Shown here: positions 50,281 to 64,000 of the stretch, in pieces
How the letters are laid out: each line of letters opens with the position of its first letter
Position numbering within the stretch: the stretch's first letter is position 1
Assembly (NCBI GenBank): GCA_025594325.1
Contig: JANHCV010000015.1
Location: 62,001-126,000, forward strand
Length of the DNA stretch: 64,000 bases
Source: Blastocladiella emersonii ATCC 22665
Taxonomy: Eukaryota > Fungi > Blastocladiomycota
Direction: 5' to 3'
Position numbers and translations under genes: made by a program
The notes under the pieces: model-generated
Database searches by the model: none
Seen by the model: the letters and a program-made list of their open reading frames with translations, nothing else
Told to the model about the DNA's origin: nothing

Positions 50281-52560
50281 ATGAACTACATGCAACAAAT
50301 GGACCTCCCGTCAGACGTGCTGGAGCAGGTTGTTGCGCTTGCATCGCCCCGGTCAGTGCTCGCTGCGGCTTCGCGAGCGGTCCACGCGACTGTCGCTTCC
50401 GGACACTTGCAGTACATATGGCTTCGTCGTGTGGTCATACTCGAAAACGAGCTCCGAGGCGTCAAGCCCGACTGGTCCCGTACGAGCGTCCCGATTCGGA
50501 CGCACATGAACGCGTACCTTGGCCGTCTACTTCGTGCTGACCGCGCAGCGCGCGCTGCTGTGATACGCGGCGACCATGCTGCTCGGCCAGTACACCCGTT
50601 CACCAACGAAATGCTGACGCGCCTTGTCCTTGCGACCCGCGCCGACCTGCAGCAACGGAGTGGACTTGAGCGAGAGGGGCTGACGTCCTACATTACCACC
50701 TTAACACAAGCTGCCGGCGCTACTCCTGGTGGTGCTGCCGCGTGGCATCCAATCTTGCTCGTGTTGCAAATTGCCATCTTTCTTGGGCTGGTGGGTGATC
50801 TCGACCTAGTCCAACATCTCGATTCCAGTTTCAAGCATCACTTGCGTACCTTTTATCCCTTCGCTGTCAAAACAATCGACCTATTTCACCTCGGTTGCGA
50901 ATTGGAGCCCAAGGCCATGCGGTCGCTCTACCGGTGGTCGGGACCGCGCAAATCGGGACGGTTTCCCGTGCTTATTCTTCTCTCTTATCTCGCGGCGCTT
51001 GCCGTGTTCCAGTGGGACTTTGACTCGGTCGCGCGCCTCGAGCAGCCGCCGTTTGGGTTCAAGGTCGACACCGTCATCAAGCATGCTGCTAGCGAGTGCG
51101 GATTGCGCCTTCTCCAGGACTACGCCACGTTGGGCCATCTGCGCAACGATACGATTCTCGCCCAACTCCAGTGGTTCAAACGCAACGGTTGGATCCCGGA
51201 ATATCAATCTTTGCCGTTCTGCGCTGAGCTATTCTTTGCTCGCGGGGACGTGGAGCTCATTGCGGCCGTGTACAACGCCTACGACCGCAACCTGGGGGTT
51301 GCTGCCAACTTTGGCCCCAATCTCGCGACCGGTGCAAGCGAACGGGCGGATGATCCGGATTTTGATGCAAGCCTTGCATCGTCTTTCCAGAACCGATATG
51401 TTGGCGTCCACGAGTTACGCGTGCTCTCAGCGGTTGGTATCCGCGCGAAGCGCCTCATCATCCAACAACTTGAAGGCGCGCTGCGCCGCTGCGACCGCGC
51501 AATGCTCGATCATGCCAAACAAATTCTCAGCCCGTACAAGCTCAAGGATAAGTTGGAAGATGGTACATCTCTCTTTGCCCTTCTCCGAATGACCACCACT
51601 TACGACTTGCTGGCCTTTGTTGCGTTAGCGCTAGAGATCGTCTCAAAGTTGACCACGCTTGACCAAATTGCTTTCTCGCTCTCCGCAGCTCTCGAAATCG
51701 GGGTCCCATTCGGCGAGTTCCTTGGGTACGACAAACGAAACCTGAACCAAATTCTCGCGACCTTCCCGACAATTGCACAGACTCTGCTCAGCTCTCCGCA
51801 CTCGCAGAGTCCCGCGACCATCTTCACTCAGCTTTTCTACGAGCCCGAGTCGAACCGCGAACTTCTCAAGACCGACGCTGCGTTGCACCTCGCCGAACTC
51901 ACCGTTTACGTCCTCAATCACCCAGAGCATCACGCTTACGCGCTGGACGTGATTCGAGGCGTCGATGGCATCCACGCCGGTTACTACTACATTGATCTCT
52001 TGCTCCTCAAGCACGCGCTTTCCCCATCCGAGTGCTCGCTTGACAATCTTTCCACCACGCTTCATCCCGACGCACCCGCCTTCTGGACTCCTTGGTGCTT
52101 AGCACTCCAATCAATCCTCGCCATGTTCCCCAAGCAGCTGCGGCGGTCGGGCATGGGCGGGCCGTACTTTCCGCGCGCGACCTTCTTCTCAACGGACGAC
52201 AACCTCCAGGCGCGACTCGAGGCCGAGGCCGCTGATCCCACTTCCTGTGACTTTACCATGCTGACAAGGCCGCTTTTGACCGAAGTCCTGATCCCCATTG
52301 ACGCCAAGTGGGTGTGTCGCGATTTGCTCAAGCTCACCAGCACGTGTCCGCAGTGGAAGAAGGATCTCGTCCCTGCCGTTTTTCACGACACGGAGTGGAG
52401 CGACGACGAGATCACTGACGAGGAGGACGCAGAGGACGAGCAAGCTGCCAACTCGTCCGCTCCTGTGCTCATGTACATGAATTCGCTGCAGTCCATGGAT
52501 CCCCACTTGTCAGATTACAGTGTGAGCGATTGGAGCGGTTCCAGTCCCGACTACGCGTAA
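50281..52560 (+). CDS. 759-aa orphan protein, F-box-like N-terminus, acidic C-terminus
   Basis: Uninterrupted ORF; MDLPSDVLEQVVALASPRSVLAAASRAV; tail DDEITDEEDAEDE. Confidence 0.7.
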   Translation: MNYMQQMDLPSDVLEQVVALASPRSVLAAASRAVHATVASGHLQYIWLRRVVILENELRGVKPDWSRTSVPIRTHMNAYLGRLLRADRAARAAVIRGDHAARPVHPFTNEMLTRLVLATRADLQQRSGLEREGLTSYITTLTQAAGATPGGAAAWHPILLVLQIAIFLGLVGDLDLVQHLDSSFKHHLRTFYPFAVKTIDLFHLGCELEPKAMRSLYRWSGPRKSGRFPVLILLSYLAALAVFQWDFDSVARLEQPPFGFKVDTVIKHAASECGLRLLQDYATLGHLRNDTILAQLQWFKRNGWIPEYQSLPFCAELFFARGDVELIAAVYNAYDRNLGVAANFGPNLATGASERADDPDFDASLASSFQNRYVGVHELRVLSAVGIRAKRLIIQQLEGALRRCDRAMLDHAKQILSPYKLKDKLEDGTSLFALLRMTTTYDLLAFVALALEIVSKLTTLDQIAFSLSAALEIGVPFGEFLGYDKRNLNQILATFPTIAQTLLSSPHSQSPATIFTQLFYEPESNRELLKTDAALHLAELTVYVLNHPEHHAYALDVIRGVDGIHAGYYYIDLLLLKHALSPSECSLDNLSTTLHPDAPAFWTPWCLALQSILAMFPKQLRRSGMGGPYFPRATFFSTDDNLQARLEAEAADPTSCDFTMLTRPLLTEVLIPIDAKWVCRDLLKLTSTCPQWKKDLVPAVFHDTEWSDDEITDEEDAEDEQAANSSAPVLMYMNSLQSMDPHLSDYSVSDWSGSSPDYA

Positions 52561-52727
52561 TCAGCTGCGGTGATGCTGCCGCGCCGCGAGTAGTATTCCG
52601 CGTCTGTCACATGACCGCGTTGCTCATGTCGGCGATGTTGGTCGCGGGCGGGCGAGGCTCAGTGCTGAGAATAAAACGCGTGAATTAATTTCGATTATAC
52701 ATAGCTTTACACGTTGTGCCGTGCACA

Positions 52728-54736
52728 TCAGTCTGGTCCAAAGGCACGCACCAGGAACTCGTCGGGAAAGGTTCTGCGCATGAAGGTGTCATCGCCTTCG
52801 CACAAATAGAGCATAAATTCCCCGAAGCGAACTGGATCGTGGGACCCCGCGGCATGAAGCACGGTTCTGGCCAGCGAGGCCTCGCGGATGGCGTCATCAT
52901 TTTGGTGAATGGCAGGTTTTGTCATGGTCCGGCAGAGCGCCACGATTGGTGCGTGCACTCGCTCAACGAGGTCCTGGTTGTACTCGTCCAAAATTTCCGA
53001 TGGGCACATGGAGAGGAGGCTTAGCCACGCGGGGACAACAAGCTCGTTCTGAAGCAGCACGAAGTTGTCGTCGAACAAGCCCCAGGTTCTCTCCGAGCAC
53101 TCGCTTGAGACTGCAACCAAAAGCGCCGCATACGCGGTCGACCATCTGTCGTAGCTCCCGTTGCCGGGAGGGATCAGTCGGTCGAGCAAGCGGCCAGCAT
53201 CGGGCTCAACCAGGACTGGGAGTAGAGTGGTTGCGAGCGTGCCAAGCAGGTTTCGGTCGTAGACGTATTCGCGGTCAAGGAGCAGCTCGAACAGCCGGCC
53301 GGCAATGACCATGCGAGTCTCGATGCCACCGATGCCAAGCGTTTCGAGATCAAAGCCAAACCCGCGGTCTGCCAAGGTATCGAGTCGCTCATTGACGATC
53401 TCGACTGTCGTGGCACGTCCGCACCGCTCAATTCCAAGCGATATCAGCTTTGAAATGGTCGTTTGATCGTCAGAGTAGGATTGGTTATGCGCTTGCATTA
53501 TGAGACCAAGGAGCTGCTGCAGTTCGACGCCCTGCGTGTCGAGGAGAAGCCGCTCCAGCATGGGTTCAGTCCAGTTCATGTCCATGATCTGGAACACAAG
53601 TGGCCCCCAGTACTGGAATTCCGCTATCCACGGCCACGCGGTAACGATAGCAAAGGCGGGCTCAATGCGATCCTTGCTGATCCAGCGGAGGAGCGCACTG
53701 AGGAACAACTCTCGCTGGTTGCCATGGAGCAAACTGGCAAGTCGGTCGCGGTCATATCTCTCGAAAACGCGTAGCAGTTTGTCCGAATCAAAGTGCTTGG
53801 GGTCAAGGTAGGCACAAATTGCAGCTGATGGGGTCAAATCCAAATAGGTCGACGCAAGCCGTAGGGTCCAACCTCGCTCCACGAGGTAATCAAGGACCCG
53901 GCAGGATACATCGAGCTTGTGATCGTTGACGCACGCGAGAAAGGCCGAATAAACGAGTGGTGTTTCGAGCGCTGCCATGACTGCGTCAGGGCGCGAAAGG
54001 CTGCCTCGAGCGCACCAAGATTCATGTGCATAGCAGCCGATATCGCGACAAAACTCACAAAGTCGACGCGAAGCATCGGTTCAGCGACCGTGACCTGCTC
54101 GGACAGCGCAAACCAGAGATCCTGGATTTTCAGCTGAATGAGATGCGTGCGGTCGGGAAACCACGTCAGCATCGTGTGCTGCGAGACGCGCGCCTCGAGC
54201 GCGAGGATAGGAAGCGAACGAACGAGCGTCGCGAGGGCGTAGTCGAGATCCGGCAAGTAACTCGCTGCTTCAAAGTACAAGGCGAGAGCCATTGCGTCAA
54301 CGGCACGGCCTGGTTCAGAAGTATTGTGGGCTCCAGGGGCAGCGGTTTCTGCCGCCTCGATGCGATCCGAGAGCGCTCGCTGCTGAGAGACAGAGCTGCG
54401 TCGGAGCGGCTGGACCAGAGCGTCAAGGAGCCGTGTTCCAAGAGGGGGACGCGGGATGCCATCAAACGCGCCATGCAACGAGAGTGCGGCGCTTGCACAA
54501 CGGGCAACGCTGGAAACGCGCTGAGGAGCGCCATCGATGGTTTCGGGCGCAGCTCTGCACAAGCGCTCCGACAGTGCGCCGCCCACGCGATTGAACCAAA
54601 CGAGCAACAGGAACGAGCGGTTGACAGCAGCGTCGGCGAGGACGCGCGACGCGCTCACGACCCGACCCGAAGGCGTGCTGAGCGCGACCATGAGCTCCAC
54701 CGCTTCATCGGGAAGTAAAGCAAATTCGTAGTTCAT
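52728..54736 (-). pseudogene. Tandem F-box-like family copy 1 (frameshifted)
   Basis: MNYEFALLPDEAVELMVALSTPSGRVVSASR. Relative to copy 2 (FKHHPQPDTVMAA), about 10 nt are missing near 53993, which shifts the frame into ORF 52728..53978. Confidence 0.75.
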
Positions 54737-54857
54737 GGTGTTGTTCATTCGATACATCGCGCTTCCATTGCGGGAGAGAGAGCGCTCCGCGGCACGCCGA
54801 CACAAACTTGACCGCTCGCCCAAACGAGGGCCTGACAGGAGTGGCAGCTCCGACCCG

Positions 54858-54872
54858 CTGTGGCGCAACGCG
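54858..54872. promoter_or_regulatory. Conserved 15-bp upstream motif of array copy 1
   Basis: CTGTGGCGCAACGCG, identical upstream of copies 1-3. Confidence 0.5.
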
Positions 54873-55074
54873 TTCTCGTCGCGCCTCGCCAGCTCGAAAG
54901 TGGACGTATTGTTGATTTCGGGTTGGTTTCAGTTCAAGTACTGGTCAAATCCCGCCCCTGTCCTAATCACCCCCGTTCCAATATCCTTGCGCGGGAAATA
55001 TACTATATCCTCACGCCAAACCCGCCGCACCGTTCCGTTACCCACCTCGCATGCCTGCTATCAAATGCATCCCT

Positions 55075-57063
55075 TCAATCGTTCATCACGTTGTAGAGTA
55101 CACGGCGCACAAGCCTCCCGTCACCCTTGAACAATGTAAGTAGAAGCGAGGTAAAACGAGTGGAGGAGGCGTGATCCGCCGCAGCGCGGAGCGCATCACG
55201 CGCAAGTTCCAGCTGGTACTGGGCGGCCGCTGAATGCGATGCGGCTGTCCCGAGGACAACACGACAAAGGTCGCGAAGCGGGTCGAAAGTCAACCAAGTG
55301 AAGTGCACGTCGTGCCTGTTCACGATCGCGGACGGACAGACGGAAAGAAATCTGCGCCATGCCGGGATAAGTCGTTCCATGAAGTACAGGTGATTTGACG
55401 CTGGCTTGCACTCGCCAGCCACGGCGACGAGGAACGAGGCGTAGGTAATGCTCCAGCGGATCAAAGTGCTTTGAATACCCCTGCCAGGGATAATATGTTC
55501 AACGTGGCCTTCAGAGTTGAGCAGAACTGGGACTAGAGTTGTAGCGAGGGCGCCAAGCAGGTCTTGGACATCATTTTCCTCGGCGTGGAGAAGCAGCAAG
55601 AGCCGACCGGCAATGATGATGCGATTGTCGATACCACCAACGCCAAGTGCTTCAAGCTCAATTCCAAACTTGCAGTTGGCAAAAACATCCAGGCGCTTGA
55701 TGACGAGGTCGAAAGTTGAAGCTTGCCCGCACCGCGCAATAACAAAGGGGATAAGTCGTGAGATAGATGTCAATGCTTCGGAGCAGGACGCCGAAGCCTC
55801 GTGTAGGATGCACCTGATGAAATTCAGCAGCTCGCTGCCCTGTGCGCCAAGCAGAAGGTAATCGAGTACGTCGTCCGGGCAACCTATTTCCATGGCTCCG
55901 ATCACGAAGGGTGCCCAGTAGCGGTGTTCCATGAGCCACGGCCAAGCGCGAGCAATCGTGAAAACCGCCTCAATACGACTTTGGTGGATCCAGCGAAGCA
56001 ACGCATCGCGGATCAATTCGCGCTGAACCTCGTCAGTCACATCGGCGAGGCGAGCGCAATCGTAATTTTCGAAGATACCGAGTAGTTCGTCAACCGTGAA
56101 GTGATCTGGGCCGAAATAGGTGAACATGGCAGCGCTTGCAGCCCACTGAATCCGCGGATCTGAGACAGCGTGGACCTCCGGGGCCCAGCCATTCCCGATC
56201 AGAAGGTCAAGCACGCCACAGGAGCTGGTGTATTCGGCACCATCGATACAGCCGAGAAAGGCCCGATAAACGCAGGGCGTAGCGTGTGCGGCCATGACCG
56301 TATCGGGTTGTGGGTGGTGCTTGAAGACAGTCAAAATTGATTCGGGATGCATGTGCATGGCTGCCGAAATCGCAACGAGGATGAGAAAGTCCGCGCGAAC
56401 CACGTCGCCAGTGAGATCCGCTTGCCCTCGCAACTCGTGAGCGAGCCCCTCGATCTGTCGATGAATCTTGAAAGTGAAGTCTGGGATAAACTCGAGTAGG
56501 CACTGCAGGGGAGCAAAAGGGTCGACGGCCAGCAGTGGAAGCGAGCGGACGAGCACCTCCAGGGCGTGGTCGAGACCTGGCAAGTTATTGGTCGACTCGC
56601 AGTAGAGCGCAAGCGTCATGAGGTCCATTGTTCGAACTGCTTTGTCATGGTTGTAACTGTGCTGCTGCCCGGCGAAAATGCAAGCTCGAAGCGCGCGTTG
56701 CCGTGCGACAGAGAGACGGCAAAGGGGCCACGTCAGCGCGTCAAACAGTGGTCTGCAAAGAGGAGGACGTGGTACATCATCAAAACTGTCTCGTAAAAGG
56801 ATCGAAGCGATCGCGCATTGGGCTACGGCAGTCCTGCGGTAGATGGCGCGGTCGCGCACAAGGCAGTCTTCGGGCACAGCCCCGAGAAGACGAGTAGATA
56901 GCGGATAGCTGACGCGATCGAACCACGAGAGCACGAGGAGCGGTCGCCCGGCGGCAGCTTCAACAAAAATACGAGAGGCGCTGATAATCTGAGATGAGGG
57001 CGCGCAGAGCGTGGCGATGACCGTCACGGCCTCGTCGTGGAGATGCATGAAGTTGAAGCTCAT
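55075..57063 (-). CDS. Tandem F-box-like family copy 2 (intact)
   Basis: MSFNFMHLHDEAVTVIATLCAPSSQIISASR; uninterrupted ORF to the stop at 55075. Confidence 0.8.
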   Translation of the reverse strand: MSFNFMHLHDEAVTVIATLCAPSSQIISASRIFVEAAAGRPLLVLSWFDRVSYPLSTRLLGAVPEDCLVRDRAIYRRTAVAQCAIASILLRDSFDDVPRPPLCRPLFDALTWPLCRLSVARQRALRACIFAGQQHSYNHDKAVRTMDLMTLALYCESTNNLPGLDHALEVLVRSLPLLAVDPFAPLQCLLEFIPDFTFKIHRQIEGLAHELRGQADLTGDVVRADFLILVAISAAMHMHPESILTVFKHHPQPDTVMAAHATPCVYRAFLGCIDGAEYTSSCGVLDLLIGNGWAPEVHAVSDPRIQWAASAAMFTYFGPDHFTVDELLGIFENYDCARLADVTDEVQRELIRDALLRWIHQSRIEAVFTIARAWPWLMEHRYWAPFVIGAMEIGCPDDVLDYLLLGAQGSELLNFIRCILHEASASCSEALTSISRLIPFVIARCGQASTFDLVIKRLDVFANCKFGIELEALGVGGIDNRIIIAGRLLLLLHAEENDVQDLLGALATTLVPVLLNSEGHVEHIIPGRGIQSTLIRWSITYASFLVAVAGECKPASNHLYFMERLIPAWRRFLSVCPSAIVNRHDVHFTWLTFDPLRDLCRVVLGTAASHSAAAQYQLELARDALRAAADHASSTRFTSLLLTLFKGDGRLVRRVLYNVMND

Positions 57064-57179
57064 GGTCAGTTCATTTGATACATGGGCTTGCGGTTGCTGG
57101 GGGGGAGAGAGCGTTCGGCAACGGCGCCGACGCTTTTCCCACCGTTCCGACGGCTGACAGAGTTGACACCTCCGACAGA

Positions 57180-57194
57180 CTGTGGCGCAACGCG
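57180..57194. promoter_or_regulatory. Conserved 15-bp upstream motif of array copy 2
   Basis: CTGTGGCGCAACGCG about 117 nt 5' of the ATG. Confidence 0.5.
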
Positions 57195-57400
57195 CCTTCG
57201 CCTCACTCAACATGCTCTCCAACAGGTGCATACAGTACGCAAGTCGTAATGCTCTCATGCTTCAGTAACGGTGCTCTTCAGAAGTCGCCTCCCTCTTCGA
57301 CACCCGCTTCACAAACTGCTCCTCATAAATTGGACCGTGTTTTGCTCCAAGCTCGCTTCACCACATTCCAACTCGCGTAGCTGCTTACGAATACATCGCT

Positions 57401-59385
57401 TCAGCCGTTCATCATGCTGGAGAGCACGCGGTTCACGAGTTCCTCGTCACCCTTGAGCAATTTGTACAGAAGCGTGGCGAAACGAACGGGAGCGTGATCT
57501 CCCGCAGCGCGGAGCACGCTGCGCGCGAGAGCCAGCCGGTGTTGGTCGGCCTTTGGCTGCGGCGGCGCCGTCCCGAGGACAAGCTGGCAAAGGTCGCAAA
57601 GCGGGTGGGAAGTCAGCCAGGTGAAGTGAATGTTGTACTCGCTCACAACCTCGGGCGGGCACAAGGAAAGAAACTTGCGCCACGCGGGGGCAAGTCGTTC
57701 CGTGAAGAACGGGCCGTTGGACGATTGCTCGCACTCGCCAGCCACCACGACGAGGAACGACGCGTAAACGATGCCCCAGCGGATCCAGGTTTTTTAGGGT
57801 GCGTGACAGCAATAACTTGTCCAAATATGCCGTCAGATTCAAGTAGAACTGGGACTAGAGTCGTGGCGAGGGCACAAAGCAAGTCTCGGAGGAAGTCTTC
57901 CTCGTCGTCGTCAAGGCGCTGCAAGAGCCAGCCGACGATGGCAACGTCAATGCCACAAACGCCAAGGGTCTCGAGCTCAATCCCAAACTTGCAGTTGGCA
58001 AAAACATTGAGGTGCTTCATGACCACGCTGAGAGCTATACCTTGCCCATACCGCTCAACAACAGCGGGAAGGAGTCGTGAAACAAAGCTCGATGCGTGAG
58101 TGAAAGATGCTGAAGCCTCGCGTAGGATACATCCGACAAGCGCCAGCAGCTCGCTGCCCTGCGAGTCAAGAAGGAGGCGGTCAAACACATCGTCCGCGCA
58201 GCTTGCTTCCATGATTTGAGTCGCAAGCGGTGCCCAGTAACGGTGCTCCTTGAGCCACGGCTACGCGGAAGCAATAGTGAAGACAAGCTCGAGGTGGCCC
58301 TTGCGGATCCAGCGAAGAAGCGCGTTGGTAATCAATTTGCGCTGAACCTTTTCGGCCACGTCGTTGAGTCGGTCACGATCGTACGTTTCGAAAGTGCTGA
58401 GCAGTTCGGCAGGCGTGAAGCGATCCGGGCTCAAGTACGTGAATATGGCAGCGCACGCGGCCCACCGAACACGCGTGCCCGTCAAGACATGAAGTTGCGG
58501 CGACCAACCGTGTTCGATAAGGAGGTCAAGTACACGGCAAGCGCCGGCGTAATCGGTGTTGTTGATACACCCGAGAAAGGCCAAGTAAACGCAGGGCGTA
58601 GCGAGCACGGCCAGTATTACCTCGGGGTGAGGGTGATGCTTGAAGACAACTTCAATTGCTTCGGCATTCATGCGCATGGCCGCCGAGATTGCAACGAGGG
58701 TGAGAAAATCCGCGCTTACCACCTCGCCAGTCAGGTCCGCTTGCTCTCGTAACTTGCGCATGAGCCTCTCGAGCTGCCGAGAAGCCTTGATGGTGCGATC
58801 CGGAATATGCTCGAGCAGACTCTGCAGGGAAGCAAAGGGGTCCACGACGAGCAAGGGCAGCGAGTGGACAAGTGCTCCGAGCGCGTGGTCGAGACCCGCC
58901 AGGTTTTTGGTCGATTCAAAGTAGAGCACCAGGGTCATGACGTCCATTGCGCGGATCGTTGCTGTCTCAGAGTCAGGATTGTGGTGCTGCCCGGCAACAA
59001 CGGGAACTCGGAGTGCGCGTTGCTGTGGGTCAGAGAGGCGGCGAAGGAACCGCATCAGCGCATCAAAGAGCGGTACACCAAGCGGAGGGCGTGGTACAAT
59101 ATCAAAGCTGCCTCGTAAAAGGATCGAAGCGATCGCGCATTGGGCTACGGCAGTCCAGCGGTAGATGGCGCGGTCGCGCACAACGCAGCCTTCGGTTACA
59201 GCTTCGAGCAGAAGGCAAGACAGCGGGCGAGAAACGCGATTGAACCACGAGAACACGAGGAGCGGACGGCCCGCGGCCGCATCAGCGAGGATGCGAGACG
59301 CGCTCACAATCCGGGACGAGGGCGAGCTAAGCATGACAACGAGCGCCACCGCGTCTTCGTGAAGTTGCATGAAGTTGAAACTCAT
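57401..59385 (-). pseudogene. Tandem F-box-like family copy 3 (nonsense plus frameshift)
   Basis: TIASA*PWLKEHRYW where copy 2 has TIARAWPWLMEHRYW (TAG at 58261-58263); extra A in an A-run near 57792. Confidence 0.8.
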
Positions 59386-59496
59386 GGTCAGTTCATTCGA
59401 TACATGGGCTTGCGGTCGCGGGAGAGAGGGCGCGCTCAACGACGCGCCGTTCTTCCCATCGCCCCGGCGGCTGACAGAGTGGACAGCTCCGGCGGA

Positions 59497-59511
59497 CTGT
59501 GGCGCAACGCG
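59497..59511. promoter_or_regulatory. Conserved 15-bp upstream motif of array copy 3
   Basis: CTGTGGCGCAACGCG about 112 nt 5' of the ATG. Confidence 0.5.
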
Positions 59512-60710
59512 ACTCGGGCGCACTTCGGTGACCTGTCAAATCACCACAACATCCTTAAAAGATACGCTCCCAGAAATAAATTCGGTGCTCGAACCCACGC
59601 TCACCGCGTGCAAATCACTCGTCCTCGTCGATCACATCGGCCAACATCAGCCCGCGGAGCTCGTCGTCCTCCCAGCCCGATCGAGCCACTCGTCAATGTT
59701 TTGTAGAGAGCCCTTGGGGAAGAGATGCTTTACCTCCAGCAAGGGCGTCACGCCCTCGCATTGTTCCATGATGAGTTCCGCAAAGTGAGTAGGGGAATGC
59801 GCTGCCGCTGCTCGGAAAATGCTCTCGGCCAGATGTTGCTGACTCGTGGCGGCTGTCGAAACGAGGCCTTGGGTAGCGCTCGCGGCCTCGTGGAGCGAAG
59901 ACATAATCTCGCAAGTCCAGTACAGGATGTTCCGGTCGCTCGGATCAACAGCCTCTGGCGGGCAATGCGCAAGGAAGGCGGCCCACGCGGAGAGCAGCTG
60001 GTCGTCGGAGAGCGCGTGGTCTTGATTGCCATCCATTGGTAAGCGCAGGCGAACGTGTTTCTTCACAACTGACAGCAGGGCCGCGTATACGGCCGCGTGC
60101 TGGGCACGGCTCGCATCGCCAGCAGGAATGAGCTCTGTGAGATGATCTTGAGCGTCAGGCTCAAGCAAGAGCAGAATCAGAAACGATCCGAGAGCGTCGA
60201 GTGTGAAGTACATAACCTCGCCATCGGCATCAAGCAGCATTTCAATCAGGCAGCGTGCGAAGGCGAGCCGGTGCCCAGTACTCCCTATGCCGAACCGCTC
60301 GAGTTCAAACCCAAATTCGTAGTCGGCGATGATGTCAAGATGTTCAAGAACGAGGTCGCCAGTAGCCGCTGATCCACATTGCTCTGCCACGTGCGAAAGT
60401 ATCCTCGAGTACGCTTGGCGGCAATCCGAGTAATGTTCCTCGATTTCGTGCAGGAGAAAGTCGAGTAGTTGCACCAGGTCTCCGCCTATTTGATCGAGGA
60501 ACATGCTGCGGAAATCCGATTCCCTGAGGTCCGACTTGAGAACCCTGGCGACCAAAGGCCCCCAGTTGTCGAGTTCCGCAACCCACGGCCACGCGCGAGC
60601 AACAGCAACAGCGGGCGCAACATGGCCGCTCTTCAACCACCCACGTAGCACGTCACAGAAGCACCAGCGCTCAGACTCGTCGGAGACTCCATCACGATTT
60701 TTTTTGGTCG

Positions 60711-60882
60711 TTTTGAAGGCGATTAAGGCACCGCAGGCAAGCGGTGCTTTCAAAAGCCATGTCCAGCCGTTGAAGGCACCCACCAGCTTTCAAAAGCACT
60801 CCCCCGCCTTCAAAAGCACTCCCCCGCCTTTGAAGGCTGTGCACGCTTTTAAAGGCTATAAACGCTGTTATCGCCTTCAAAA
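60711..60882. repeat. Left subterminal repeats of the TIR element
   Basis: TTTTGAAGGC and GC(C/T)TTCAAAA in both orientations; tandem 20-mer ttcaaaagcactcccccgcc x2; hairpin gcaccgc-aggcaa-gcggtgc. Confidence 0.8.
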
Positions 60883-63037
60883 CGCCCAGGAAAAATTCAA
60901 TATAGGTTCGCCAGCTCACGCTCCAGCTTCGCTTAGGGTCCACGAGAAAGATATAGGGAGGAACAAAATGTATTGATCATCAGGCACATCGAGGGCGGGA
61001 GATGGTAGGAGGGCGACGACCGCGTCATGTCGCGGCCGATTCGAGAGGGCCGAAGTACACCGTGCTTGGCCGCCATCGACCAGCGAGCCGGCGCGTGCAC
61101 GCGGCCGTGACCATGGGAATTCTTGGAGATAAGCTTGGGCATACAGTTGCAGCGCTTGGGAGATGCGCGCTTGGGTACAGCATCATCAGCGCTACGAGGA
61201 ATAGGCGAGTGAGTGACTTGTCGCGGGTAAGCAAAAGCCGCGGGGCGCGTACCGTGGCCATGGCCGTCGCCTGCTTGAAGATGCATGTACTTGTCGCGGT
61301 TGACCTTGCGCGCGCGAGCGAGTTCACGCGGAAGCCGACTACACGGTGCAGGCGGGGCGCGACGAGTCAGTGACGAGCCGCGTGGGAGACTTGGTGAGTG
61401 GTGTGCAGACCGTTGGCGTGAGAGGGATCGACCGGGACACGGTGGTCGGGCCGGGACTCGGCGGCGGGCGGCGGCGGCGAGGAGGACCGGACGGCAGCCG
61501 CGTGCGAGCCCAACTAGTCGACTTGAAGGAGGCCGACTTGAAGGAGGCCGACGGGTGGGCACGATGACGGTGGCTGAGCTTGGTGAGCGAGGTTCGTGCG
61601 GGCACTACACAGCGAGACGATGCGAGACGGGTCAGGATCGCCGCTCGTTGGGACGGGGCGACGAACGAGTTGGCGACGGCGAGGGCGACGGCGAGGGCGG
61701 CATCAACCAGCGTCAGCGGAGCACCAAGTAGGTGCGCAGACAGCGTAGTCGAGGGAGATCGAGCCGTGACGAGTGGAACGGGTAGCGCAGAGCGAGAGTG
61801 TCGCGGCGAAGGGGAGCGGCGGCGGCCGTGAGGATTCGGGGAGCGACGGTTTGGCGTAGGGAGCGAGGGTACTGCGGTGGCTGGGAGGTTGCAAACATGA
61901 TGGTGGAGGGAGGTGGGCAAGGGGCGAGCGAGGGGCGAGCGAGGCGGCGGCGGCGGCGGACCAGAGGCAGGCTGAGGTTCACGGCGCGCGCCGGTGCAGC
62001 GTGGGCCGCGCGGCGGCGTCGGTGTTGCCAAGCATGTCGTTGGTGCGTGTGGTTGTGGTGAGGAGGGGGCGGCGGGCGGGGGAGAGAGCGGGGGCGGGCG
62101 GCGGCGCTCGCCCTTTGTTTGGCGGCCGGGTGGCTTGCCCGCCGCCGGGCCGCGGTGATCGCCGAAGGGCGGAGGCCACAAAACGTGACGCGCCTGTCAC
62201 TTCAAGCACGCCCGCTCCCTGTGATTTTCGGGACTTCGCGTCGGCGCGAGTGCGCGCCCGCACTGCTGCTACAAGCCCGGCCCGGCCGCTCCTATCTGTG
62301 TCGGTCCGCTCGAGCTCACCTCGCCCTGCGCTACCCGCCGCCTCCGCTCCATCCTGTTCCATCCGTGCGCCCAGCGCTGCTCCCAACTGCCCACCGTCGC
62401 CGCGGCGAGCGAGCGCGGGTCGCGAAAAGCCGCGCCCCGACTGCGCGCCGTCTCGGCCAGCGCTGCGCCGCTCGTAGATCGTGCAAGCCGCCGGGCTCAC
62501 ATGCTGAGCGCGAGCAGCTCGGGGCAGCGAGCGTCGATCGTGAGCGATCAAACGCCGTTCAGGGCGAGGTCGGCGGCGCCCGCCAGGGCCATGGCGACGT
62601 TGCATGCGGTGCCGCCGCGAACAGCGTGCTCAAGGCCGTGCCGCACGCCGCACGGGGCGCCCGCGTTGGCCAGGGCGGCGGTCTCGCGCGGGGCTGCGCG
62701 CCGGGCTGCGCGGCTGAGCGGGTCGCGAAGGACTGCTCGCGCGCGGGTAGGACGCAGGGCAGGGCCAGTGTTGGCGCCTGGCTCGACGCCGCCGCCGTCC
62801 TGCTCAGTGCGACACGATGAGGCGAGGCGTGACGGGTCGGAGCCTCTCGGGAGCGCGCTCAGTCAAAGCTTCAAGTTGTTGCAGTGGTTACATGACGATA
62901 AATTCGCGTTAGAGCGCTGTGTGTGATGCGGAGGGATCGGGGAGCGGGGGTTCGAGGGGCAGGGTGGTGGGGAGGTGGTCTGCAGCCGGCGGCCCTTGGC
63001 TGTGAAGCGGCGGGGAAGCTCTCAAAGGAGCGCGGCG

Positions 63038-63130
63038 GCCTGCAAAGCGGCGGGGGTGCCTGCAAAGCGGCGGGGGTGCCTGCAAAGCTGTGGGGAGCTG
63101 CCTGCAAAACGGGGTGAGCGCCTGCAAGCC
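63038..63130. repeat. Right subterminal repeats of the TIR element
   Basis: GCCTGCAA(A)G motif at about 63038, 63058, 63078, 63100 and 63120 (20-22 nt period). Confidence 0.85.
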
Positions 63131-64000
63131 TGAAACGAATTTCGTGATGTCCCTCGAAATGGGAGCGATCGTATCGCTCGAACAAATGAATGAAGGCGCC
63201 GGGATCGGAAATGTTCGGATTTAGGAAGCCGCAGATGAAGGCGCGTGTCGAATCTGTCTCGTCCACCCAAAATGTCTGAGGCGCCCATCCGCGATCCGCA
63301 ATCCAGTCGAGCAGGCGGCAGACGGAATTGAGCGTATCATTGCGGACACCTTCAAGAAAAGTCTTACACACGGGCGGTGTCGCAAGCACAGCAATGATCG
63401 ATTCCGGGTTTGGATGATGCTTGAAGACAATTTGGAGCGTGTCAAGACTCAAGTGCATCGCGGCAGAGATCGCGACGATGGTCAAAAAGTCGACGTGCGT
63501 GATTTCGCCGGTATCCTTGGCGTGCCTGGCCAGTCCATGCCAAAGGTTCTGGCGTAACTCTCCAAACGAAGGCGTCCAACCCGGGACCCAGAGCAGGAGG
63601 CTTCGTGAAGTAAACTGAGCGTTGGAAACAAGTCCAGGAAGGGAGCGGACAAGCTCCTTGAGCGCAAGCTCAAGGTGCGCTGCATTTCGAGTTACTTCGA
63701 AGTAGAGCGCAAGGGCAATTGCGTCAAGGATGGATTTGGTCGCGCCTTGGATGCTGCTCGCCTCATAATGCCCGAACTTGTCCTGCTCGGGCTCGTCATG
63801 CATGGACTGGATGAATTCGACGAATGCGCGCTGCTGATCCGTCGAGACACGAGAGAGTGTTTGCATAAGAGAGCGAAAAAGGTTCAAGTTGAGCGGAGGA
63901 TGAGGAAGCTCGCCAAAGTCATCATTGAGGGCTATCGCTGCGCTCGCCACGCGCGCAATTGCAGTAATCCAACCGGGATCAGGGTGTTGCTCATAGCGCT

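Follow-up and report, generated by a model that had tools for sequence, protein, structure and literature searches.

Canonical CACTA/En-Spm (CMC) transposons have CA..TG termini, short target-site duplications (TSDs) and subterminal repeat arrays, and they frequently give rise to non-autonomous derivatives. The Plavaka transposase (Pfam PF18759) was reportedly described by Iyer et al. in 2014. A recent comparison [Kojima 2025 (Biology 14:1741, PMC12730594)] relates Plavaka to CACTA/EnSpm, Mirage, Chapaev and Transib and divides it into two lineages, PlavakaA with TGT..ACA ends and a 2-bp TSD, and PlavakaB with 5'-CATCA..TGATG-3' ends and a 2- or 3-bp TSD. One of the families shown, PlavakaB-1_AuSu from Auricularia, starts CATCACGAAAC (PMC12730594, Figure S2). 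DNA transposons were very few in the single blastocladiomycete genome that was available to a survey of 2017 (PMC5751038), and the genome paper (PMC9730499) is without a transposon analysis. We have analysed a stretch of 64,000 nucleotides from Blastocladiella emersonii ATCC 22665 (contig JANHCV010000015.1, positions 62,001 to 126,000), here called the window; positions given without a contig or locus name are those of the window. It contains a real 2.46-kb cut-and-paste transposon, probably of PlavakaB type, that lacks an enzyme of its own and splits a gene.

The element covers positions 60690-63149 (2460 bp, read directly from the letters). Its 8-bp terminal inverted repeat (TIR) is not significant when taken alone, with four matches to CATCACGA in the window against 2.6 expected. 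As a terminus of this length is within chance in 64 kb, the case for an element is made by its multi-copy family. The 32.65-Mb assembly (21 contigs, denoted C1, C3 and so on) was searched with the left 211 bp and the right 200 bp of the element. The left end matches 15 places at 90-100% identity and the right end matches 15 places and one 69-bp fragment. Pairing of the end matches gives 14 full-length copies of 2398-2505 bp, the flanks of which are all different, and leaves three fragments: the 69-bp piece, a truncated copy on C15 (L048:9473-9781 = C15:380972-381280) that stops abruptly after the first 309 bp, and a truncated copy on C3 that retains only positions 1482-2460. The full copies begin with CATCACGA, T8-9 and GG, the 8-bp terminus being identical in 14/14 and in the truncated C15 copy as well, and they finish with TCGTGATG, which is changed by one base to TCGTGTTG in a single copy (L033).

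An exact 2-bp TSD is found at 10 of the 14 full copies (TC, AA, GC, CA, GG, GC, GT, AC, AA and TG), with no target consensus visible. At 1/16 per copy, the chance of ten or more such duplications is ~1e-9 by our own arithmetic. The other four loci are irregular: the duplication is 3 bp (GCG) in L035 and 6 bp (CGCCAG) in L032 (C1:3720184-3722643), and none is present in L034 or L040. The L040 copy is very young, being 99.7% identical to its sister copy. Pairwise identity among the full copies ranges from 92 to 99.7% and defines several sub-lineages, the youngest trio being 99.4-99.7% identical. The copy in the window has its nearest relative at C1:3720184 (97.8% identity) and a terminal branch of ~0.006 substitutions per site.

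The element lies within a gene whose tandem paralog is intact. Residue 261 of the upstream piece is aligned at paralog residue 400, which puts its final residue, 267, opposite residue 406 of the paralog; the halves of the gene meet at 406|407, with nothing lost or added. When the element and one TC are removed, ...HFEG joins VSDESERW... in frame. As the sequence stands, the N-terminal frame continues ~92 codons into the element before reaching a stop; at its other side it stays open for ~300 bp past the window end (L016). The locus documents the knock-out, by insertion, of one member of a lineage-specific tandem gene family. The first-pass annotation, made from the window alone, had described a 2460-bp TIR element with a 2-bp TSD (TC), cleanly inserted between two halves that remain open, and had proposed counting the copies and tabulating their TSDs. 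Direct reading of the borders bears out this description and the 14 full-length copies, ten of them with an exact 2-bp TSD, settle it; collinearity with the paralog, the in-frame junction and the frame open past the window do the same for the host gene. Its further suggestion that the insertion is recent is loosely supported by the short terminal branch, the nearest copy being 97.8% identical as against the 99.4-99.7% reached in another sub-lineage.

Features of the element and its host gene (positions in the window; a dot marks features to which no strand is assigned)
Feature	Position	Strand	Basis or content
Intact tandem paralog, 727 amino acids	55075-57258	-	uninterrupted reference; no Pfam domain
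Host gene, C-terminal (downstream) part	59647-60689	-	from first residue = paralog 407 onward, E 4e-34
Left TSD, TC	60688-60689	.	direct reading
Left TIR, CATCACGA, then T8-GG	60690-60697	+	direct reading and copy comparison
Left subterminal region	60698-60896	.	TTTGAAGGC / GCCTTCAAA motifs in both orientations
GC-rich interior	60897-62991	.	no conserved reading frame, no transposase remnant
Right subterminal array	62992-63132	+	~20-nt units, each bearing GCCTGCAAA(G)
Right TIR, TCGTGATG	63142-63149	+	direct reading and copy comparison
Right TSD, TC	63150-63151	.	direct reading
Host gene, N-terminal (upstream) part	63150-64000, runs past window end	-	paralog residues 149-400, E 2e-40

The interior of the element has a G+C content of 68-72%, compared with ~65% for the window and 55-60% for the surrounding block of tandem genes. 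Substitutions among the 14 copies fall evenly on the codon positions, and the long frames are open in only 2-8 of them. Neither a Pfam search of the interior frames nor tblastn of a resident Plavaka transposase against the element gave a match, and an Rfam search of the element returned nothing meaningful. With no frame conserved among the copies and no transposase remnant, the element is non-autonomous, and the earlier proposal that it is mobilised in trans is supported. Interior coding capacity or captured gene fragments were considered, and none was found by copy comparison and Pfam. An introner-like reading was also set aside, as there is no GT..AG at the element borders on the strand of the gene and the size is 2.46 kb.

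Both ends of the element carry a short repeated motif. The window has nine occurrences of TTTGMAGGC where 0.68 would be expected, and eight of the nine are located within ~200 bp of the element ends. At the left end exact motifs start at 60712, 60806, 60829 and 60873, and a 27-nt inverted repeat pairs 60697-60723 with 60870-60896. At the right end exact motifs start at 63038, 63058, 63078 and 63100 and there are degenerate copies besides, the spacings being 20, 20, 22 and 20 nt; repeat finding on this end reports five direct-repeat copies with spacings of 20, 20, 20 and 42. The number of units in the right array varies among the family copies by one 20-nt unit (180 vs 200 nt). Followed from either terminus towards the interior, the motif points the same way at the two ends, and the left end adds copies in the opposite orientation. 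The arrays at both ends had been noticed at first reading, in both orientations on the left and at ~20-nt spacing on the right, where the exact copies number four and the others are degenerate. This layout is that expected of subterminal transposase-binding sites, for which the TTTG(A/C)AGGC arrays are candidates. We know of no biochemical study of a Plavaka transposase; ends that are base-exact over 14 copies, together with the symmetric arrays, provide a concrete candidate for such a binding site.

Comparison with the described groups places the element closest to PlavakaB. The termini CATCACGA...TCGTGATG, which conform to CATCA..TGATG, are present in the window copy and in 13/13 other full copies (one of them with the single-base change in its right terminus); the TSD measures 2 bp in 10/14 copies and 3 bp in 1/14. 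Read inward, the right end starts CATCACGAAATTCG, the first 10 bases of which are the same as the start of PlavakaB-1_AuSu, and the genome itself contains genes for Plavaka transposases. From these features of sequence we consider it likely that the element belongs, as a non-autonomous copy, to a new PlavakaB-type family, within the CACTA-related CMCT clade. The published PlavakaB families are 6-9-kb autonomous elements of Agaricomycotina, whereas the present family is 2.46 kb, non-coding and from a blastocladiomycete; it also differs from them in having long subterminal arrays of 20-nt units and in that a cognate autonomous copy was not found in the assembly. The element resembles canonical CACTA/En-Spm transposons in its CA..TG termini, short TSD and subterminal arrays. 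It differs from them in having CATCA rather than CACTA or CACTG at its termini, a TSD of 2 rather than 3 bp, and a link to PF18759 rather than to Transposase_21.

The CMC/EnSpm-type affiliation given by the first-pass annotation therefore stands for the wider CACTA-related (CMC/CMCT) assemblage. Its view that the CATCA terminus falls outside the described groups does not, because CATCA..TGATG is given as the hallmark of PlavakaB (PMC12730594). It had also suggested an undescribed family; the family itself does appear to be undescribed, but it belongs to a kind, PlavakaB, that is already known. The locus would carry the published PlavakaB end signature well beyond the mushrooms in which the group was defined, and would add to the little-studied Plavaka group a non-autonomous family that is well delimited, multi-copy and recently active. 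As a kind of element it is not new, and its use lies in the annotation of a model zoosporic fungus.

Plavaka (PF18759) is above the Pfam cut-off at three loci of the genome, and a query with the transposase protein finds further paralogs. The best PF18759 locus lies in a 6646-bp element (L056:561-7206 = contig C17:1222860-1229505) with the ends CATCGTGA...TCACGATG and the TSD TT, which bears an 877-amino-acid Plavaka transposase frame (PF18759, E 3.5e-13). When this element and one TT are taken out, a host frame of 424 amino acids is open through the junction. The element has a single full-length copy and ~1-kb derivatives on contig C3, where C3:466375-474003 and C3:498453-506081 form a large inverted duplication; each arm holds one ~1-kb derivative, the ends of which are 77-85% identical to those of the 6.6-kb element.

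The 6.6-kb element and the present family have in common CATC-NN-GA termini, a 2-bp TSD, poly-T followed by GGTCG on the left and AA on the right, and GCTTT-type motifs ~40 and 60 nt from the right terminus, in the same register and ~20 nt apart. They differ at terminal bases 5-6, which are GT in the 6.6-kb element and AC in the present family (two of the eight bases), and in the subterminal motif (CTTTCGG-like as against TTTGMAGGC). No similarity was found between the interior of the present element and the resident transposase-bearing elements. The different terminal bases, the different motif and the lack of a common interior indicate sister families rather than autonomous and derivative forms of one family. 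A deletion derivative of the resident transposase-bearing elements is rejected, as there is no interior similarity.

The search for an autonomous partner compared the ends and interior with the whole genome, and used three terminus patterns, the Pfam families Transposase_21 and Plavaka, and the transposase-protein query. A longer copy with the same termini and a DDE transposase, the presence of which the first-pass annotation had proposed checking, is not among the CATCACGA-ended copies. The single-ended copies on C15 and C3 were tried as longer copies and rejected, having kept only 309 bp and positions 1482-2460, with no transposase nearby. Four extra terminus-like matches (C3:1276748, C11:2161516, C15:621374 and C16:1949626), one of which sits within an ordinary coding frame, have no partner terminus or transposase.

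The enzyme may have been supplied by a partner that the genome no longer has or that the assembly lacks; alternatively, a related Plavaka transposase may act across families. A Plavaka DDE transposase made elsewhere would bind the subterminal repeats of the element and cut at its CATCA termini; the element would then enter the target at a cut staggered by 2 nt, repair of which would yield the 2-bp duplication. The nearest candidate for the kind of enzyme source would be the 6.6-kb sister element. The assembly as searched has no autonomous copy of this family, although the members of one sub-lineage are 99.4-99.7% identical, and we tentatively raise the possibility, which is the less likely case, that the family is currently moved by a Plavaka transposase of a family with other terminal bases (CATCGTGA vs CATCACGA). 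If true, this would imply relaxed end recognition in Plavaka enzymes and ongoing DNA-transposon activity in Blastocladiomycota.

Several points weigh against the assignment to PlavakaB and against movement by a Plavaka enzyme. The element contains no transposase, and its placement in PlavakaB is drawn from ends and TSD alone. No transposase was found in or near any CATCACGA-ended element of the assembly as searched, and the terminus CATCACGAWWW is near none of the Plavaka transposase paralogs found by protein query. Between the sister element and the present family, terminal bases 5-6 and the subterminal motif are different, so that mobilisation across the two is no more than a possibility. 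Finally, 4/14 copies depart from a simple 2-bp TSD, the duplication being 3 bp in one, 6 bp in another and absent in two.

Some of the same features would be expected of a non-autonomous transposon from a different branch of CMC (Mirage or EnSpm-like) that is moved by a resident enzyme of Transposase_21 type, but we regard this reading as improbable. Mirage-type elements also make 2-bp TSDs, as the present one does, and the genome contains one Transposase_21 (PF02992) locus (C16:202179-202616, E 1.9e-11). However, the termini of the element are not of the CAC type that characterises Mirage, and around the Transposase_21 locus, where element ends are not delimited, there are no CATCA-type ends or TTTGMAGGC motifs. 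CATCA..TGATG is moreover specific to PlavakaB in the published comparison (PMC12730594).

Still less probable is an origin among the PHIS (PIF/Harbinger-ISL2EU) elements, as a non-autonomous form that depends on the Harbinger transposase abundant in this genome. The TSD in this group is 3 bp (TWA) or 2 bp. Some PHIS lineages do make 2-bp TSDs (PMC12730594, section 3.1.4), and the genome has at least 75 two-exon PIF/Harbinger DDE_Tnp_4 copies with open frames, so that this explanation is not dismissible by absence of the enzyme. The published Harbinger ends are GGG-type, not CATCA (PMC12730594, Figure S1), and a Harbinger derivative should match the ~75 Harbinger copies, whereas the ends of the present family match only its own 14-16 members. 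The DDE_Tnp_4 copies (for example C3:72950-73435 and C7:365788-366331) are far commoner than the Plavaka families. A sequence that is not mobile at all, whether a segmental repeat dispersed in the genome or an artefact of assembly that has short inverted ends by chance, would agree with the chance-level 8-bp terminus in the window but is refuted by the table of copies and TSDs, since 14 copies have base-exact borders in unrelated flanks, TSDs in 11-12 cases and motif arrays at their ends, the host gene and its paralog stay in exact register on both sides of the insertion, and 14 independent loci make an assembly error at the junctions unlikely.

The host gene is located in a block of 55-60% G+C that holds a tandem array (50281-64000) of about five paralogs of a lineage-specific family without a Pfam domain. 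The paralog at 52728-54868 is split into two frames, and a plus-strand member at 50281-52560 was assigned to the family by eye. Two parts of the element interior, 61838-62518 and 62032-62259, match C7:368586, C5:537630, C18:306087 and C19:1865150 at 67-74% identity, and two of these four loci are ~2 kb from Harbinger transposase genes. Beside the truncated C3 copy there are three open frames (L049:1931-7116 = C3:764930-770115). An rve-like integrase core (E 1.3e-6, short of the Pfam cut-off) is found in one; another encodes a 375-amino-acid protein of unknown function and the third a 780-amino-acid DUF5906 / D5-like helicase protein (E 2e-18). Judged by these frames, the locus resembles a virus-like or Polinton-like element that has become integrated.

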